IMG/VR virus record: IMGVR_UViG_3300025869_002060
Coordinates: 1-64,000 of that record
Reading direction: 5' to 3' (one strand)
Length of the DNA: 64,000 nucleotides
The notes below the pieces were generated by a model, which was not told the DNA's origin, did no database searches, and was given only the letters and a program-made list of their open reading frames with translations. The position numbers and the translations under genes were made by a program. How positions within the stretch are numbered: the stretch's first letter is position 1; each line of letters begins with the position of its first letter. Positions 6,798 through 13,268 of this stretch are shown here, piece after piece.

Positions 6798-7268
6798 TTG
6801 GTAGATCCAATCAGTGCCGTTGCGATTGCAACAAGTGCTTACAAAGGTCTGCAGGTTGCAATTACAGCTGGACGAGAACTTGATGAAGTTGCTACAACAT
6901 TAGGTAAATGGTTTGGTGCAGTTAGTGACTTTAGAAAATCAGAACAAGAAATAAAAAACCCGCCATTATTCAAGAAGATGTTGTACAGTGGGTCAGTGGA
7001 GCAAGAAGCATTAGAAATTTTTGCACACACTAAAAAAATAGCAGAACAAGAACAAGAGTTAAAAACACTTATTTCTTTTAGATATGGCCCAAAGGCCTGG
7101 GAAGAAATGATTGAACTAAGAAGGAAGATACGAGCCGAAAGAGAAAAAACAATATACAAACAAGAGAGACGTAAAGTATTCATAATTGATTGTGTACTAG
7201 TTGTAGTTGGAATATCAATTGGGGTGGCTGTACTTGTTGGTGTAGCAATGTGGCTTGCTAGTCTTTAG
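6798..7268 (+). CDS. membrane-anchored hypothetical protein
   Basis: AGGAGG SD, TTG start; C-terminal hydrophobic helix. Confidence 0.7.
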   Translation: MVDPISAVAIATSAYKGLQVAITAGRELDEVATTLGKWFGAVSDFRKSEQEIKNPPLFKKMLYSGSVEQEALEIFAHTKKIAEQEQELKTLISFRYGPKAWEEMIELRRKIRAEREKTIYKQERRKVFIIDCVLVVVGISIGVAVLVGVAMWLASL

Positions 7269-7348
7269 ATAAACATCAAAAATTAAGCCGACCATGTAGG
7301 CTTTGAAATAAAAGATTGGAGAAATTATATATGAGGAGTTAGGCTGAA

Positions 7349-7891
7349 ATGTCGACGGAGAAGAAAGGACCCGAAGTAGAATTTGCAGGAGTGAAATTCA
7401 GAGGCGGGAAGATAGTAATATTAGTAACAGCATTATCAACTTTAGGTGGTGGATTGTATGCTGGGTTTGAGTTTTACAAAGATTATATGAACATGAGAGA
7501 AAAGATTGAGTCTTATGTTGCCCCAGACTTATCAGGATTTCAAGAGAAGATAAGTGTGATGCGTAAAGAAGTTGAATCAATGAAAGAGCTAGTTAGTGAT
7601 GCTCAAGCAACAGCAAGAGACATACGCACTGATTTAAGATCTGAAATTGGTGATCAAACAGATCAAATTGCGGCATTGGATAAACGAAGCCGCACAGCAG
7701 ATAGAGAAGTTAGAGAATCACTTCGTTCAAGTGAAAAAGATATTAGAGGTTTAATCAGTAGTACTGATAAAAGATGGGACGATAAACTGGGCAAAGTTGA
7801 TGCTCAAATAAATGCCCTTGAAACAAAAATAGATAAAAAGATAACAAAGGCTTTAGAAAATCCATTAGCCAATATGGCTACAACAAAATAA
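7349..7891 (+). CDS. membrane-anchored coiled-coil protein
   Basis: GAGGAG SD; N-terminal TM segment followed by a long coiled coil. Confidence 0.7.
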   Translation: MSTEKKGPEVEFAGVKFRGGKIVILVTALSTLGGGLYAGFEFYKDYMNMREKIESYVAPDLSGFQEKISVMRKEVESMKELVSDAQATARDIRTDLRSEIGDQTDQIAALDKRSRTADREVRESLRSSEKDIRGLISSTDKRWDDKLGKVDAQINALETKIDKKITKALENPLANMATTK

Positions 7892-8234
7892 TTAACATAT
7901 AGTATGTTAAGTAATGAAGAGCTTGGTCTATTGAAGTAATCCACCAAAACTTAACGGTGTTTTTCTCTACAGACCAGCTCTTTATTGCTGATGTCTTTAC
8001 ATAATCAATATGCCAATGAGCAATCCAGTCAATTGCTCCTGCAATTAAAGCAGTAATTGGTCCTATACCACAAATTAGAAATACCAAAGCGGTTCCTATA
8101 CCGTGTGTACCATAATGTAAGTGTGCTCTTTTACCACGATAGTTGTGCTTGTTTAGAGTACCTTGCATACTTTGTATGCCAATATCTGCTATTGCATGTT
8201 TAACCAACAGTAAAAGAAATATGTTCAAATCCAT
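7878..8234 (-). CDS. DUF3307-like membrane protein
   Basis: KHAIAD, IAHWHIDYVK and DQALH His/Asp motifs with hydrophobic helices. Confidence 0.65.
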   Translation of the reverse strand: MDLNIFLLLLVKHAIADIGIQSMQGTLNKHNYRGKRAHLHYGTHGIGTALVFLICGIGPITALIAGAIDWIAHWHIDYVKTSAIKSWSVEKNTVKFWWITSIDQALHYLTYYMLIILL

Positions 8235-8257
8235 GCATATATTTAACATATTTCTCA

Positions 8258-8716
8258 ATGATAAGTACTTTTATGAAGTACTGGTTAGAATACGTTAAAG
8301 CTGGTTACGACTTGATCATGGAAGCAGAACGCAATACGTCTGTGATACTTGATGATCCAGTAGAACTACACTTGGTACATATGTTTGCACGATCAATTGA
8401 ACGTACAGACATAGGCGAAACACCAGTTGGTGTGCTTTTAAAAAAAGCAGTGTACTTCCGAGACAGAACTAAAGTATTAGAAATTGCAGACGAATGTTTG
8501 TTAGTTCACAGTTACCCACTAAGAAGAAAAACTTGGCCTAGTGAAACATATTACATTGAACTAGGATTAATGGGATATGGATATATTGATCATCCTCACA
8601 TGAGTCAACATAATAATTTTACATTGTCAAGTAAAGTTTTAAATTTTATGTTTACTCGTTCAATTGAAGACCCACCAAACACAGATATAATTTTATCTGT
8701 TGATACTCAACACTAA
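8258..8716 (+). CDS. hypothetical protein
   Basis: 152-aa ORF divergent from the DUF3307-like gene. Confidence 0.6.
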   Translation: MISTFMKYWLEYVKAGYDLIMEAERNTSVILDDPVELHLVHMFARSIERTDIGETPVGVLLKKAVYFRDRTKVLEIADECLLVHSYPLRRKTWPSETYYIELGLMGYGYIDHPHMSQHNNFTLSSKVLNFMFTRSIEDPPNTDIILSVDTQH

Positions 8717-8726
8717 GTAAAACGAA

Positions 8727-8802
<76 letters not shown>

Positions 8803-8811
8803 AAATAAGTC

Positions 8812-8840
8812 TTGACAATACTAATAATAAATAGTATATT
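8812..8840 (+). promoter_or_regulatory. sigma70-like promoter (overlaps a TAAATA box)
   Basis: TTGACA-N17-TATATT. Confidence 0.65.
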
Positions 8841-8870
8841 ACAAGCATACTAACAGAAAGAATAGAGAAC

Positions 8871-8936
8871 ATGATCAAAACTAACACAACATATATTATT
8901 TGTTGGCCACTGCAACAGGGGTATGTTTTGACGTGA
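8871..8936 (+). CDS. putative attenuator leader peptide (21 aa, MIKTNTTYIICWPLQQGYVLT)
   Basis: Short ORF between the promoter and a terminator; Thr/Ile-rich with a single TGG codon. Confidence 0.5.
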   Translation: MIKTNTTYIICWPLQQGYVLT

Positions 8937-8958
8937 CTTTGTGATCAAAGTTATTAAT

Positions 8959-8992
8959 AAAAGCCCCTAGCATTAAGTTAGGGGCTTTTTTT
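8959..8992 (+). terminator. intrinsic terminator / attenuator hairpin abutting tRNA-Trp
   Basis: AAGCCCCTA-loop-TAGGGGCTT followed by a T-tract ending 1 nt before the tRNA. Confidence 0.8.
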
Positions 8993-9066
8993 GTGGGTGT
9001 AGTGTAATGGCAACACGGCTGATTCCAAACCAGCAAACGGGGGTTCGATTCCCTCCACCTATGCCA
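8993..9066 (+). tRNA. tRNA-Trp(CCA)
   Basis: Cloverleaf; anticodon loop TTCCAAA centred on CCA (A31-C39 mismatch); G73 discriminator; encoded CCA. Confidence 0.85.
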
Positions 9067-9068
9067 AT

Positions 9069-9167
9069 TTATCGAGCAAATTGTTGTTTACTGAGTAATG
9101 TATTGATAATGTTTTTACGGTGCTGTCTAATTAGTTTTAGATAGCAAAATAAATGAAATGTATTCAT
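9069..9167 (-). CDS. riboswitch-controlled small basic peptide (32 aa, MNTFHLFCYLKLIRQHRKNIINTLLSKQQFAR)
   Basis: AAGGAGG SD 7 nt upstream of ATG; lies directly downstream of the tandem aptamers. Confidence 0.7.
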   Translation of the reverse strand: MNTFHLFCYLKLIRQHRKNIINTLLSKQQFAR

Positions 9168-9196
9168 TTCTCACCCTCCTTGGTTAAAAGTTAGGT

Positions 9197-9245
9197 GCGT
9201 TCCTTCGGTTTCATTACCTACTTCCGTCTCTTGCGAGATGAACGA
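9197..9245 (-). ncRNA. glutamine riboswitch aptamer (glnA-type), proximal copy
   Basis: Reverse complement CGTTCA-TCTC GCAA GAGA-CGGAAGTA-GGT AATGAA ACC-GAAG-GAACGC: P1 CGUU/AACG, P2 with GNRA loop, GGAAGUA/GAAG junction, P3. Confidence 0.8.
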
Positions 9246-9252
9246 TGATAAT

Positions 9253-9299
9253 GCGTTCCTTCGGCTTAATTGCCTACTTCCGCCCATTTGGGTGAACGT
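9253..9299 (-). ncRNA. glutamine riboswitch aptamer (glnA-type), distal copy
   Basis: Reverse complement CGTTCA-CCC AAAT GGG-CGGAAGTA-GGC AATTAA GCC-GAAG-GAACGC; P2 and P3 covary relative to the proximal copy. Confidence 0.8.
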
Positions 9300-9330
9300 T
9301 GTTTAGCATACGTATTTACCATAATATTGG

Positions 9331-9359
9331 TTGACTTATTGCTAATTTAGTACTATAGT
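9331..9359 (+). promoter_or_regulatory. sigma70-like promoter
   Basis: TTGACT-N17-TATAGT, divergent from the riboswitch transcript. Confidence 0.65.
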
Positions 9360-9399
9360 ATGTATATAGTAAAAAGAGTTATGTGAAGGAGTTTTATGT

Positions 9400-9621
9400 T
9401 TGTTTGAAATGGATGCATTTTCACATGCCGTGATCGCTGTAGTTTGTTTATTTATAGCATGGTATGTTGGTAGAAATTGGGGCCGGAAAAGTTTAGCAGA
9501 AGCTGTCATTGAAACAACTCTAGATAACTTAGAACGCTCTGGGTACATATGTACCGAAACTGGTAGGAATGGTGAGAAAGAACTAATTCCTATCTCAGAA
9601 ATTTTAGCAAATAAGGAATAG
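9400..9621 (+). CDS. small membrane protein
   Basis: N-terminal TM helix; AGGAG SD upstream. Confidence 0.6.
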   Translation: MFEMDAFSHAVIAVVCLFIAWYVGRNWGRKSLAEAVIETTLDNLERSGYICTETGRNGEKELIPISEILANKE

Positions 9622-9752
9622 CAAAATGGTTACAGTTGTCACTATTTTTGGATATATTGTACTAGCTAATTTTGTTGCATCTGGCGTAATGATGGCCATT
9701 GGCAATTAATTTTAACGGTATTCTTAATAAGGTATATAAAGAGTATTAGAAT

Positions 9753-9856
9753 TCGGAAGGTGGTATTGCTTGGGTCGCTACTAGGCAAGAGAACAGGTTT
9801 GGTGATAGAACATCAGTCTTAAGTATCCATTGATGAAACAGTGGAACACCTTCCGG
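9753..9856 (+). ncRNA. candidate structured ncRNA (unassigned)
   Basis: Perfect 9-bp closing stem CGGAAGGTG/CACCTTCCG enclosing three hairpins; ends 8 nt before tRNA-Ala. Confidence 0.55.
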
Positions 9857-9864
9857 CAAAGTTT

Positions 9865-9940
9865 GGGGCCGTAGCTCAGTTGGGAGAGCGATGCCTTTGC
9901 AAGGCATAGGTCGTCGGTTCGATCCCGTCCGGCTCCACCA
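9865..9940 (+). tRNA. tRNA-Ala(TGC)
   Basis: GGGGCCG acceptor with G3:U70, loop TTTGCAA, encoded CCA. Confidence 0.95.
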
Positions 9941-9941
9941 T

Positions 9942-10015
9942 GCGGGTGTCGTATAATGGTATTACCTGAGATTTCCAATCTCATGACAGGAGTTCGATTC
10001 TCCTCACCCGCTCCA
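9942..10015 (+). tRNA. tRNA-Gly(TCC)
   Basis: GCGGGTG/CACCCGC, TGAGA-TTTCCAA-TCTCA, U73, encoded CCA. Confidence 0.95.
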
Positions 10016-10035
10016 ACCAATCCGTAACGGAATGT

Positions 10036-10112
10036 GCGCCTGTAGCTCAGCTGGATAGAGCATTTGACTACGAATCAAAAGGCCAGGAGTTCGAATCTCT
10101 TCAGGCGCACCA
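10036..10112 (+). tRNA. tRNA-Arg(ACG)
   Basis: GCGCCTG/CAGGCGC, TTTGA-CTACGAA-TCAAA, encoded CCA. Confidence 0.95.
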
Positions 10113-10141
10113 ATTTTTTGCATAATATCTTATTTTTTTGG

Positions 10142-10170
10142 TTGACAATCAATAAATGATGTAGTATAGT
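10142..10170 (+). promoter_or_regulatory. sigma70-like promoter
   Basis: TTGACA-N17-TATAGT. Confidence 0.7.
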
Positions 10171-10203
10171 ATTATTATTGTTAAAAAACAAATGAGGTAA
10201 GAA

Positions 10204-10524
10204 ATGAATACCGTAGCATCGTTTATGCTTCTTTTTAACTTTACATTGGCAATGCCCGATGGCGAAGTTCGCGAAGAAATAGTTAATGTATATTCTAAGC
10301 ATTTTGAGTCGCAGAAAGAATGTACAGATTTTCTTGAATCGTGGGAAGGCATAATTAAAAGTCGTGGAGTAAGCACATTACAAGATATGCTTAAAGACGG
10401 ATACAAAGTTAATTTAAACGTTGTCAAATGTGAGCTAGTACCTAGCTTTGCTCCATTGCCAGTTGATGAAAAAGCTGAAGACGACAAATTTGATGATGAT
10501 GACAATCATCAAGCACACGGATAA
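10204..10524 (+). CDS. putative secreted hypothetical protein
   Basis: GAGG SD; hydrophobic N-terminus; two Cys; acidic tail. Confidence 0.65.
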   Translation: MNTVASFMLLFNFTLAMPDGEVREEIVNVYSKHFESQKECTDFLESWEGIIKSRGVSTLQDMLKDGYKVNLNVVKCELVPSFAPLPVDEKAEDDKFDDDDNHQAHG

Positions 10525-10705
10525 GGTTTTCTAGGGAGACGTGGCGTTGATAGCGCCTAGTAGGGGATTGCAGACCCTACGATGAGAAGGAGGGTAACAC
10601 TTCCAAAACCAAGGCACGATGACAGTAAGTCCGGCTACGATCAAGTCGTTAGATGGATAGGCGAGGCCAGAGACCGGGTGAAAGCCCACAAGGACTGGGG
10701 GCTGT
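10525..10705 (+). ncRNA. candidate structured ncRNA (unassigned)
   Basis: GC-enriched intergenic stretch with several stems (GGTTTT/AAAACC, GGCG/CGCC, GTAGGG/CCCTAC, GGGT-GAAA-GCCC, AGTCC/GGACT). Confidence 0.45.
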
Positions 10706-10757
10706 ATTCAAAAAAGTTTTGAAGTTGATTCCATCAGATCGTTTTATAAATAACTGT

Positions 10758-11690
10758 ATGATAAAAATTGTTACTAATAATATAGAATTACCCTCAATGG
10801 TGTTTGAGCCAATTAGTAACCCTTTTGTAGACAAGTTCCTTTTAAAAATTAAAGATGTGCAAAGCAGATTTGCAATGGTTGAATGGCTTGAACGCATTCC
10901 CTACACTCGCAATGATGATATGGGTAGTTGGGAAAATCATAAAAAAGAATCCTACAAAGATTTTGATATTGGAATCAATGGTATTAAAAAACTAGGATAT
11001 GATTTTCCTGTAAACTACGAAGATATAAAAATTGATTTAAACCTTGATACAGTACATCTATTAAATCGTTTGCATAGGTATTTTACCACAGGTTGTCGAT
11101 CAACGTTTGAAGAAATGCAAACATACGATGACAAAACATTCTTTAAATTAAAAACTGAACACCAATGGACTTTCAACGATCTAATACATCATGTAAATGA
11201 CGGTGTACACAGATTAGAAAATTTTATTGATACGCCACGTGCATTAGAATTCCCAGCAGAAACAGAATATCAGATTGCATTTGATTCTCATCAACCATTT
11301 GATTCAGCTGATACTGCCAATGATTATTTTGTTGACATTACCCAAGATGATCAACAATACTTTAGTGATAAACTAGAATACGAAATGTGGTTACCTTGGC
11401 ACCAAATTCTAGGCAAGTGTTATTGGGACGCCTATTTTGCATACGACGATCCAACACAATGGGATTGTAGCGAACATGTTCAATATAGTGGCAGTTTTGC
11501 ATTGGGAAAACGTACACAAGCACGAAATCCTAAAATTGAAGAATGGCTAAAATCGTGGGGTATTGACCCAGGTCCAATGACATGTGGAATACCGGTGGCT
11601 AGATTGGTTAGTGGTCAGCAGACTTTTGACTTTTTGCAATCACAAAAAGAAGGTCCTTGTTCGCTTATTTGTGAAATTGAAATAAACTAA
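10758..11690 (+). CDS. hypothetical protein
   Basis: ORF 10653..11690; likely start ATG 10758 just after TATAAATA at 10745. Confidence 0.7.
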   Translation: MIKIVTNNIELPSMVFEPISNPFVDKFLLKIKDVQSRFAMVEWLERIPYTRNDDMGSWENHKKESYKDFDIGINGIKKLGYDFPVNYEDIKIDLNLDTVHLLNRLHRYFTTGCRSTFEEMQTYDDKTFFKLKTEHQWTFNDLIHHVNDGVHRLENFIDTPRALEFPAETEYQIAFDSHQPFDSADTANDYFVDITQDDQQYFSDKLEYEMWLPWHQILGKCYWDAYFAYDDPTQWDCSEHVQYSGSFALGKRTQARNPKIEEWLKSWGIDPGPMTCGIPVARLVSGQQTFDFLQSQKEGPCSLICEIEIN

Positions 11691-11691
11691 A

Positions 11692-12141
11692 TTATTTCTT
11701 TCCGTTTTTTATCTTATCAATTTCTTCAGCATTATCATTGATTAGTTTGCTTTGATTCATATCAATTAAAGACTGCAATTTTTGAGCTCTCTCAAGATCT
11801 GTGTCCAAGTGCAGGTCTTTGTTGATAACTTTCTCTAATTTTAAGAATTGAATTCTTTCATTAGGAACAAAACGCCAGGTATATCCTCGATCAGAATATA
11901 CACCAAATACTGTTTCAGAAATTCCAATTTTGACTATAATAGCATCTTTGTCGTCAAGTAGAACTTTATCGCCTTCGTTAAAAGCACGATTTAATTTAAA
12001 TTTTAATCCTTTGGCCAGGCTTGTTGCAAAATCTTTAAACATCATTGTAGCAACTAATGCAATTAATGCAACTGCAAAAGGTTCAATTATATGTGCAATT
12101 TCAAAGCCAACGGCATTTGCAGATAGTATAGTAGGATCCAT
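11692..12141 (-). CDS. small MscS-like mechanosensitive channel protein
   Basis: TM helix, then FKDFATSLAKG...AFNEGDKVLLDDKDAIIVKIGISETVF, resembling the MscS TM3/beta domain. Confidence 0.55.
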   Translation of the reverse strand: MDPTILSANAVGFEIAHIIEPFAVALIALVATMMFKDFATSLAKGLKFKLNRAFNEGDKVLLDDKDAIIVKIGISETVFGVYSDRGYTWRFVPNERIQFLKLEKVINKDLHLDTDLERAQKLQSLIDMNQSKLINDNAEEIDKIKNGKK

Positions 12142-12653: not shown

Positions 12654-13268
12654 ATGTTAGCAAACCTATTAGACGGAGTCAACAGAGCTTTGGTTACTAA
12701 GTTGGTAATTTTACATACCTTAGTAATTGCTGTCTCAAACTACCTAGTAACAATTAGATTTGATTTATTTCCCGGGGCAGAATTGCCACTATTTGGATCA
12801 TTTCCACTCGCGGCCGCGGCGTTCACATTTCCGATCGTTGTTGTTGCAACTGATTTGACTGTACGGTTAATTGGTAAACAAGCAGGAAGAGCCGTTGTGG
12901 CTATGGCCATTATTCCAGCTATTGTGGCGTCGGTGCTAGTGCTATTAGCACTTGGTGACGAACACGCCTACAGAGTTGGACTTGCAAGTGGCACAGCCTA
13001 TGCAATTGGAACAATGCTTGATGTATATGTATTCCAACACATTCGTGAAAAGTATACCGAAATGTGGTGGGCGGCACCAGCAATTTCTACAGTTGTTGCC
13101 AATATCATCGACACCTATGCATTCTTCTATACAGCGTTCTATCCGGCACCTTGGGTACACGGCGTAGCGTTCAATAATACACTTACTAAAATTGTAGTAG
13201 GTCTTATTGTATTCTTACCAGCATACGGTATGTTATTATCGTATCTTAGGAATAGAGTTAAGTCTTAA
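12654..13268 (+). CDS. yhhQ: queuosine precursor transporter (YhhQ/Vut family)
   Basis: SNYLV, AFTFP...ATDL, G...D..VF, STVVANIIDT..F motifs; multi-TM; AAGGAG SD. Confidence 0.8.
   Translation: MLANLLDGVNRALVTKLVILHTLVIAVSNYLVTIRFDLFPGAELPLFGSFPLAAAAFTFPIVVVATDLTVRLIGKQAGRAVVAMAIIPAIVASVLVLLALGDEHAYRVGLASGTAYAIGTMLDVYVFQHIREKYTEMWWAAPAISTVVANIIDTYAFFYTAFYPAPWVHGVAFNNTLTKIVVGLIVFLPAYGMLLSYLRNRVKS

Follow-up and report, generated by a model that had tools for sequence, protein, structure and literature searches.

A conserved Trp-codon leader that probably gates a phage tRNA-Trp gene by attenuation

Directly in front of a tRNA-Trp gene of a marine phage, we identified a short leader open reading frame (ORF) with an invariant tryptophan codon and a switchable intrinsic terminator, an arrangement that is conserved in 115 units from viral and metagenome contigs. 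The best explanation for this arrangement is a ribosome-mediated (leader-peptide) transcription attenuator that senses the charged form of the very tRNA whose gene it gates, such that the phage probably makes this tRNA only when ribosomes run short of charged tRNA-Trp. Function is inferred from sequence comparison and predicted folds, and we place the probability of this reading at roughly 75%. Phage tRNA genes are usually discussed as constitutive supplements for codon usage, or as replacements for host tRNAs lost to degradation or anticodon nucleases. To our knowledge, control of a tRNA gene by a leader-peptide attenuator has not been reported, although the literature we searched did not include most subscription journals.

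The window analysed here comprises 64,000 nucleotides at the start of a 228-kb viral contig, IMGVR_UViG_3300025869_002060. Nearly all of its long ORFs are on the plus strand, and they include ribonucleotide reductase, a DnaB-like helicase and tail proteins. The best protein matches to cultured phages are only about 50-57% identical, to jumbo phages of Pseudomonas, Agrobacterium and Xanthomonas, and thus the contig represents an uncultured large marine phage whose host is unknown. The attenuator-like element lies within a small tRNA region, and its parts are listed in the table below.

Features of the tRNA-Trp leader region and flanking tRNA genes (positions are those of the window)
Feature	Position	Strand	Description
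tRNA-Thr	8727-8802		upstream of the promoter
Sigma-70-type promoter	8812-8840	+	TTGACA (8812-8817), 17-nt spacer, TATATT (8835-8840)
Inferred transcript start	near 8847	+	
Shine-Dalgarno (SD)-like stretch	8855-8867	+	purine-rich, AGAAAGAAUAGAG
Helix P1, 5' strand	8870-8881	+	CAUG.AUCAAAAC; contains the start codon; pairs with 8925-8935
Leader ORF	8871-8936	+	21 codons plus TGA (8934-8936); encodes MIKTNTTYIICWPLQQGYVLT
Hairpin Ha	8887-8905	+	CAACA / UGUUG; 3' arm is the Cys codon plus the TG of TGG
Trp codon	8904-8906	+	the only TGG; proposed sensing codon
Hairpin 1:2	8906-8922	+	GCC.CUG (8906-8912) / CAG.GGU (8916-8922); 3' arm is the G-run
G-run (segment 2)	8917-8922	+	AGGGGU
Extended antiterminator hairpin (2:3)	8917-8968	+	AGGGGU:GCCCCU at the base, GUGACUUUG/CAAAGUUAU at the tip; -18.2 kcal/mol
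Helix P1, 3' strand	8925-8935	+	GUUUUGACGUG; overlaps the stop codon; 5' half of the extended antiterminator
Intrinsic terminator (3:4)	8959-8992	+	13-bp stem (8959-8971 / 8977-8989) with GCCCC/GGGGC core, 5-nt loop, U7 (8986-8992); -20.4 kcal/mol
Segment 3	8963-8968	+	GCCCCU; C-run at 8963-8967
tRNA-Trp	8993-9066	+	anticodon CCA, G73, encoded CCA end
tRNA-Ala, tRNA-Gly and tRNA-Arg	9865-10112		

An initial annotation of this region had proposed a promoter, a 21-codon leader with one TGG, an intrinsic terminator and the adjoining tRNA-Trp gene, linked by a 1:2 / 2:3 / 3:4 set of alternative pairings, and we were able to confirm each of these elements. The promoter matches 11 of 12 consensus positions and is the joint best of 11 promoter-like sites in 7500-10500, although the number of such sites is not above that in shuffled sequence and the single site therefore proves little alone. 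The SD-like stretch is weaker here than the AAGGAAU of most relatives. While a simple terminator scan did not list the terminator hairpin, RNAfold, the Rfam Thr_leader alignment and our own covariance model all pair it. The tRNA was identified by ARAGORN and by the Rfam tRNA model (59.6 bits). The U-tract abuts tRNA position +1, which leaves no room for an independent promoter. The conserved block contains TTGAC(A/G), but a transcript started there would still contain the whole terminator and no antiterminator, and the promoter scan listed no such internal promoter in the window. The 146-nt leader RNA folds at -42.3 kcal/mol (z = -5.44), and 0 of 200 shuffles fold as well.

To determine whether this arrangement is conserved, we next searched for relatives. 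The neighbouring proteins were of little use, as a 152-aa ORF found one distant relative without tRNAs and a 345-aa ORF found only the window's own contig. In contrast, a degenerate tRNA-Trp pattern found 29 viral stretches, each of which has the same unit upstream: a promoter, SD, a short ORF with TGG, a G-run, and a terminator abutting the tRNA. These fall into five clearly different leader versions. A looser tRNA pattern applied to metagenomes added more units, and also showed that more divergent tRNA-Trp genes have a plain promoter directly upstream and no leader. A scan for the conserved leader core GGGGTATGTNTTGANNTGACTTT found 89 viral stretches. Together these searches gave 115 units, 47 of which are distinct as combinations of leader peptide and tRNA cluster. 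The first gene downstream is tRNA-Trp(CCA) in every case, although in one locus ARAGORN missed the tRNA and we identified it by eye from the sequence. The tRNA abuts the terminator in 79 units, and about 21 have a 70-96-nt spacer. The tRNA-Trp sequences behind the leader differ widely, so the link is not a single hitch-hiking module, and the flanking proteins of these contigs are only 25-50% identical to those of the window while the core of the unit is nearly invariant.

The element was not found in 185,579 species genomes scanned with either the tRNA pattern or the leader core. Near and distant BLAST searches of 50,697 cultured phage records with this region and with the unit of a relative found only tRNA matches and no leader, and the tRNA-Trp genes of Vibrio phage TDDLMA and Erythrobacter phage L02 have no such leader. 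Other tRNA genes in the phages that carry the unit sit behind plain TTGACA-type promoters. Our covariance model finds one copy in the 64-kb window (132.5 bits), and none upstream of leaderless tRNA-Trp genes.

Several features of the relatives suggest that the leader ORF is translated. The ATG is invariant, an SD-like motif lies 4-11 nt upstream of it in 43 of 47 leaders, and the strict promoter pattern TTGAC-N17-19-TAnnnT is present at the equivalent place in 39 of 47. The distance from ATG to TGG is 27, 30 or 33 nt, and that from TGG to the TGA embedded in the conserved core is 21, 24, 27 or 30 nt in 43 of 46 distinct leaders; insertions and deletions therefore come in whole codons. The peptide itself is not conserved. 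Codon positions 1, 2 and 3 vary about equally, with no excess of variation at the third position, and three different reading frames cross the conserved block GGGGTATGTYTTGAYRTGACTTT at the 3' end of the ORF, which points to a constraint at the level of RNA. This is what is expected of a leader in which only the act of translation and the regulatory codon matter. Trp is present in 47 of 47 leaders, and is the only residue present in all of them apart from the initiator Met and the Gly forced by the G-run. In 36 aligned leaders TGG has zero entropy at all three positions, while neighbouring positions of the same hairpin covary. However, TGG is itself inside hairpins Ha and 1:2, and part of its conservation could thus be structural. 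The initial annotation had also considered that the leader might sense Thr or Ile, but this alternative is not favoured, as Thr is absent from 3 of the 47 leaders and tRNA-Thr lies outside the controlled unit.

The consensus terminating fold has five helices, namely P1, Ha, hairpin 1:2, a small hairpin that we term P3, and the terminator. P1, which pairs the start-codon region with the block around the stop codon, is an addition to the scheme of the initial annotation, which otherwise holds. Across 43 leaders this fold is 91.7% paired, nine pairs show changes on both sides, and none of 500 column shuffles reach the observed values, with the caveat that related sequences can exceed shuffles without any structural constraint. 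The compensatory changes include AAAAC/GUUUU in P1 of the window against AAGAC/GUCUU in relatives, three of the 5 pairs of Ha, one pair of hairpin 1:2 in 9 sequences, and four pairs of the terminator. Hairpin 1:2 is part of the minimum-energy fold, and in the window it forms together with P1 and Ha a 5' domain of -16.8 kcal/mol.

The alternative fold pairs the G-run with the C-run of the terminator, and extends to a hairpin of about 20 bp with P3 at its tip, rather than the roughly 6 bp of the initial annotation. It excludes the 3' strand of P1, hairpin 1:2 and the terminator. This hairpin is 93% paired across 43 leaders, against 33-66% when the partners are slid, and is so conserved that its covariation within the main clade is not above shuffles (97 of 500). 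The strength of the 2:3 duplex reaches only p = 0.02-0.11 per sequence in the main clade, and a test of the free-energy gain from pairing the C-run, against shuffled upstream sequence, was not significant, although we judge this statistic poor because the real sequence is built to have two near-isoenergetic folds. Independent support comes from a group of five loci, clade C, whose leader MNTKYTNNYEWCGCEPPGGVL scores only 29 bits with our model of the main clade and yet has the same build. Its terminator arms have changed to ACCCCCG/CGGGGGU and its segment 2 has changed in step to CCGGGGGU, giving 8 perfect pairs with the 5' arm, and none of 1000 shuffles give as strong a duplex.

We then asked whether the position of a ribosome could select between these folds. 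The distance from TGG to the G-run is 10-21 nt (median 13), and that from the G-run to the stop codon is 11 nt in 43 of 47 leaders. In folds of transcripts truncated just before the 3' arm of the terminator, the C-run pairs with the G-run at a probability of about 1 in five of six variants when a ribosome footprint is placed with TGG in the A-site, and at a probability of 0 when the footprint is on the stop codon. The exception is a leader variant, B, whose G-run is only 10 nt from TGG and lies inside the footprint we assumed. At equilibrium the full-length RNA always prefers the terminator, as is probably also the case for the trp attenuator, and the model therefore depends on kinetics.

Based on these data, we propose that when charged tRNA-Trp is plentiful the ribosome passes TGG and reaches the TGA, where its footprint covers the G-run and the 3' strand of P1. 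The C-run is then left free to pair with the 3' arm, and RNA polymerase terminates in the U-tract immediately before the tRNA. When decoding of TGG is slow, the ribosome would sit over Ha and segment 1, and the G-run, 13 nt downstream, would stay free to form the antiterminator with the C-run before the 3' arm of the terminator is made. Polymerase would then read into tRNA-Trp, and RNase P would cut off the leader at 8992/8993. New tRNA-Trp, once charged, would restore leader translation and shut the gate, a negative feedback loop on the supply of charged tRNA-Trp. Without any translation, the 5' domain should form first and sequester the G-run, favouring termination. There is only one Trp codon in 37 of 47 leaders, whereas classical attenuators use runs of regulatory codons, and sensitivity to mild shortage would thus be low; we infer that the element could work as a switch if host tRNA-Trp becomes scarce or is destroyed during infection. 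If correct, this model would imply that tRNA-Trp, and perhaps tRNA-Cys, tRNA-Pro and tRNA-Ile(AUA), become limiting during infection of the unknown marine hosts. The element is small, self-contained and built from parts that should work in E. coli, and it could also serve as a compact reporter of tRNA-Trp charging.

Other explanations appear less likely. The unit could be an independent small gene, encoding a short peptide or a roughly 146-nt sRNA with its own constitutive terminator, in which case tRNA-Trp would be made by fixed, leaky read-through and nothing would sense Trp. The stability of the leader RNA, its ending in a hairpin plus U-tract whether it is terminated or cut by RNase P, the precedent of attenuator-derived sRNAs such as rnTrpL (PMC6614838), and the lack of significant antiterminator covariation in the main clade are consistent with this view. 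It does not explain, however, why the unit always precedes tRNA-Trp, why TGG is invariant, why a G-run complementary to the 5' arm of the terminator always lies within a ribosome footprint of the stop codon, or why this run co-changes with the terminator in clade C, and the peptide is not conserved as protein. It is similarly unlikely, though possible, that the leader is an attenuator that senses general translation capacity or another signal, such as EF-P-dependent Pro-Pro stalling, Cys codons, or a nascent-peptide arrest like TnaC. Pro follows Trp in most leaders, Pro-Pro occurs in about 30 of 47, Cys is next to Trp in 37 of 47, and a single Trp codon is a weak amino-acid sensor. Yet Pro-Pro and Cys are not universal, whereas Trp is, the controlled gene is always tRNA-Trp, and the CC of the Pro codon pairs with the G-run in hairpin 1:2 and so has a structural reason to be there. 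Moreover, the terminator is intrinsic and not Rho-dependent as in tna. Sensing through UGA read-through by tRNA-Trp was rejected because the downstream frame is not conserved.

We consider it very unlikely that the hairpin is mainly the terminator of a convergent minus-strand unit, consisting of tandem glutamine riboswitches plus a 32-codon ORF, and that its position before tRNA-Trp is incidental. On the minus strand the stem is followed by UUUUAUUAAUAA, and two glutamine aptamers (62.4 and 58.8 bits, above the gathering score) and an ORF with a strong SD point towards it. In this window the A-tract upstream of the hairpin would also let it terminate minus-strand transcripts. The hairpin nevertheless abuts tRNA-Trp in relatives that have no minus-strand gene downstream and that lack the upstream A-tract, and the riboswitch unit was not found beside the hairpin in most relatives. 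Bidirectional use is at most an add-on specific to this window.

The element is predicted to work like the trp, thr and phe attenuators, and would extend this form of control from amino-acid and synthetase genes to tRNA genes, and from cells to viruses. With the E. coli trp operon attenuator (trpL; Rfam Trp_leader RF00513) it appears to share a short leader with Trp codon(s), alternative 1:2 / 2:3 / 3:4 hairpins, an intrinsic terminator, masking of segment 2 by a ribosome at the stop codon, and an antiterminator weaker than the terminator. It differs in controlling a tRNA and not biosynthetic enzymes, in having one Trp codon instead of two in tandem, in the extra helix P1, in a U-tract that abuts the mature 5' end of the product, and in being viral only; no Trp_leader hit appeared even at E<=1. 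The best Rfam match is the threonine operon leader (Thr_leader RF00506), with which it shares the overall layout of leader plus terminator. This match scores 37.8 bits over the full model (E = 2e-5 in a 701-nt search), below the gathering score of 55, with about 21 bits coming from the terminator alone, as the reverse-strand hit shows, and the leader has no Thr/Ile codon run. The remaining Rfam hits to the element were below-threshold trpB and sRNA models that, like Thr_leader, are driven by the terminator. The pheST attenuator and T-box leaders probably follow a related logic, in which a component of the translation apparatus is switched on when its cognate charged tRNA is short, but these control aminoacyl-tRNA synthetase genes, and T-boxes bind uncharged tRNA directly, without a ribosome. 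Here the sensed molecule and the product are the same tRNA species, and no T-box hit was found in 7000-12000 at E<=1, nor does any other riboswitch model match this region. As with rnTrpL of Sinorhizobium meliloti (PMC6614838), the leader RNA, which would be released both by termination and by RNase P cutting, could act in trans, although such a role is pure speculation.

Interestingly, tRNA-Cys, tRNA-Pro(UGG), tRNA-Ile(UAU), tRNA-Met, tRNA-Tyr and tRNA-Ser(UGA) were found only downstream of the leader in these loci, and the codons beside TGG appear to follow this cargo. This raises the tentative possibility that the leader is a codon-programmable gauge for a whole tRNA operon, and not for Trp alone, in which the codons next to TGG are rewritten when the tRNAs behind the terminator change; phages would then carry a compact sensor that reports which decoding capacities the infected cell lacks and supplies exactly those tRNAs. 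A phylogenetically controlled test of this association had no power, as the tree from about 120 columns is barely supported and too weak to separate the pattern from shared ancestry, and the codon before TGG is also constrained by hairpin Ha. In the raw association tables, tRNA-Cys occurs only behind leaders with a Cys codon (17 against 0 of 9), and tRNA-Ile(UAU) only behind leaders with ATA-ATA (5 of 9 against 0 of 34). All 3 operons that contain tRNA-Gly(UCC) have a Gly codon before Trp, while none of the 5 phages that carry tRNA-Gly(UCC) outside the operon do. Two of the loci, L093 and L120, are identical over about 440 nt apart from two leader codons and a few bases just upstream of the terminator; the codon before TGG is GGT in L093, where the third tRNA is tRNA-Gly(UCC), and TGT in L120, where the third tRNA is tRNA-Cys.

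Coordinates of additional features in the window and in loci that carry a leader in front of tRNA-Trp
Feature	Sequence	Position	Strand
Two tandem glutamine riboswitch aptamers (RF01739), SD and 32-codon ORF	window	9194-9300, 9069-9167	minus
Region of very high summed contig depth over tRNA-Thr	window	8736-8797	
Region of very high summed contig depth over one glutamine aptamer	window	9201-9262	
Conserved RNA between terminator and tRNA-Trp	L075	229-324	+
Conserved RNA between terminator and tRNA-Trp	L102	3368-3463	+
Second short ORF between terminator and tRNA-Trp	L086	12956-13051	-
Vut_1/YhhQ-type transporter ORF (PF02592)	window	12654-13268	+
DUF3307 ORF	window	7878-8258	-

Along with the leader, we identified two tandem glutamine riboswitch aptamers with scores of 62.4 and 58.8 bits, above the gathering score of 35, that are followed by a strong SD (AAGGAGG) and an ORF encoding MNTFHLFCYLKLIRQHRKNIINTLLSKQQFAR. 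This unit is transcribed towards tRNA-Trp in a genome where almost everything else is on the plus strand, and read-through from the leader would be antisense to it. The terminator of the window has an upstream A-tract that would let it also stop this minus-strand transcript. In four marine metatranscriptomes, the summed contig depth is very high over tRNA-Thr and over one of the glutamine aptamers; however, this signal comes from short contigs with mismatches, that is, from conserved copies belonging to other organisms and not from this phage.

Amongst the loci that carry the leader, the codons next to its TGG appear to track the tRNAs found in the attenuated operon. When two otherwise near-identical loci, L093 and L120, were aligned, GGT was found to go with tRNA-Gly(UCC) and TGT with tRNA-Cys. 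Amongst further loci (L085, L105, L100, L111 and L044), ATA-ATA goes with tRNA-Ile(UAU), and TAT before Trp goes with tRNA-Tyr. This pattern is not separable from shared ancestry with the data in hand. In L093, L120, L100 and L111, as well as on the reverse strand of L010, where it lies 4 nt after tRNA-Trp, the tRNA that ARAGORN calls Ile(TAT) is 94 nt long and has a long variable arm like class II tRNAs, so its amino-acid identity is uncertain. Several of the tRNA-Trp(CCA) genes behind the leader are themselves 85-88 nt with a long variable arm (L059, L064 and L075), and one of them gives a weak tRNA-Sec hit.

In L075, L102 and nine other loci, the region between the terminator and tRNA-Trp contains a conserved RNA of about 78 nt with a cloverleaf-like fold, consisting of a 10-bp closing stem, a hairpin with an anticodon-like 7-nt loop (CUGCAAU), and a GAAA-loop hairpin with compensatory changes. 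This RNA is not called by ARAGORN and has no Rfam match. In L086 and L126, a second short ORF with its own SD, encoding MTDSEYWRWMKSQVE and containing two Trp codons, is located at this position. In clade C, which comprises the loci L006, L009, L018, L041 and L052, a leader with a different sequence (MNTKYTNNYEWCGCEPPGGVL) has the same architecture in front of an identical tRNA-Trp, followed by tRNA-Cys, and L018 carries a 93-nt insert between the two tRNAs that is absent from L041.

Finally, the Vut_1/YhhQ-type transporter ORF (E = 2e-20) lies near the tRNA cluster of the window, and the DUF3307 ORF is one of the few ORFs found on the minus strand.
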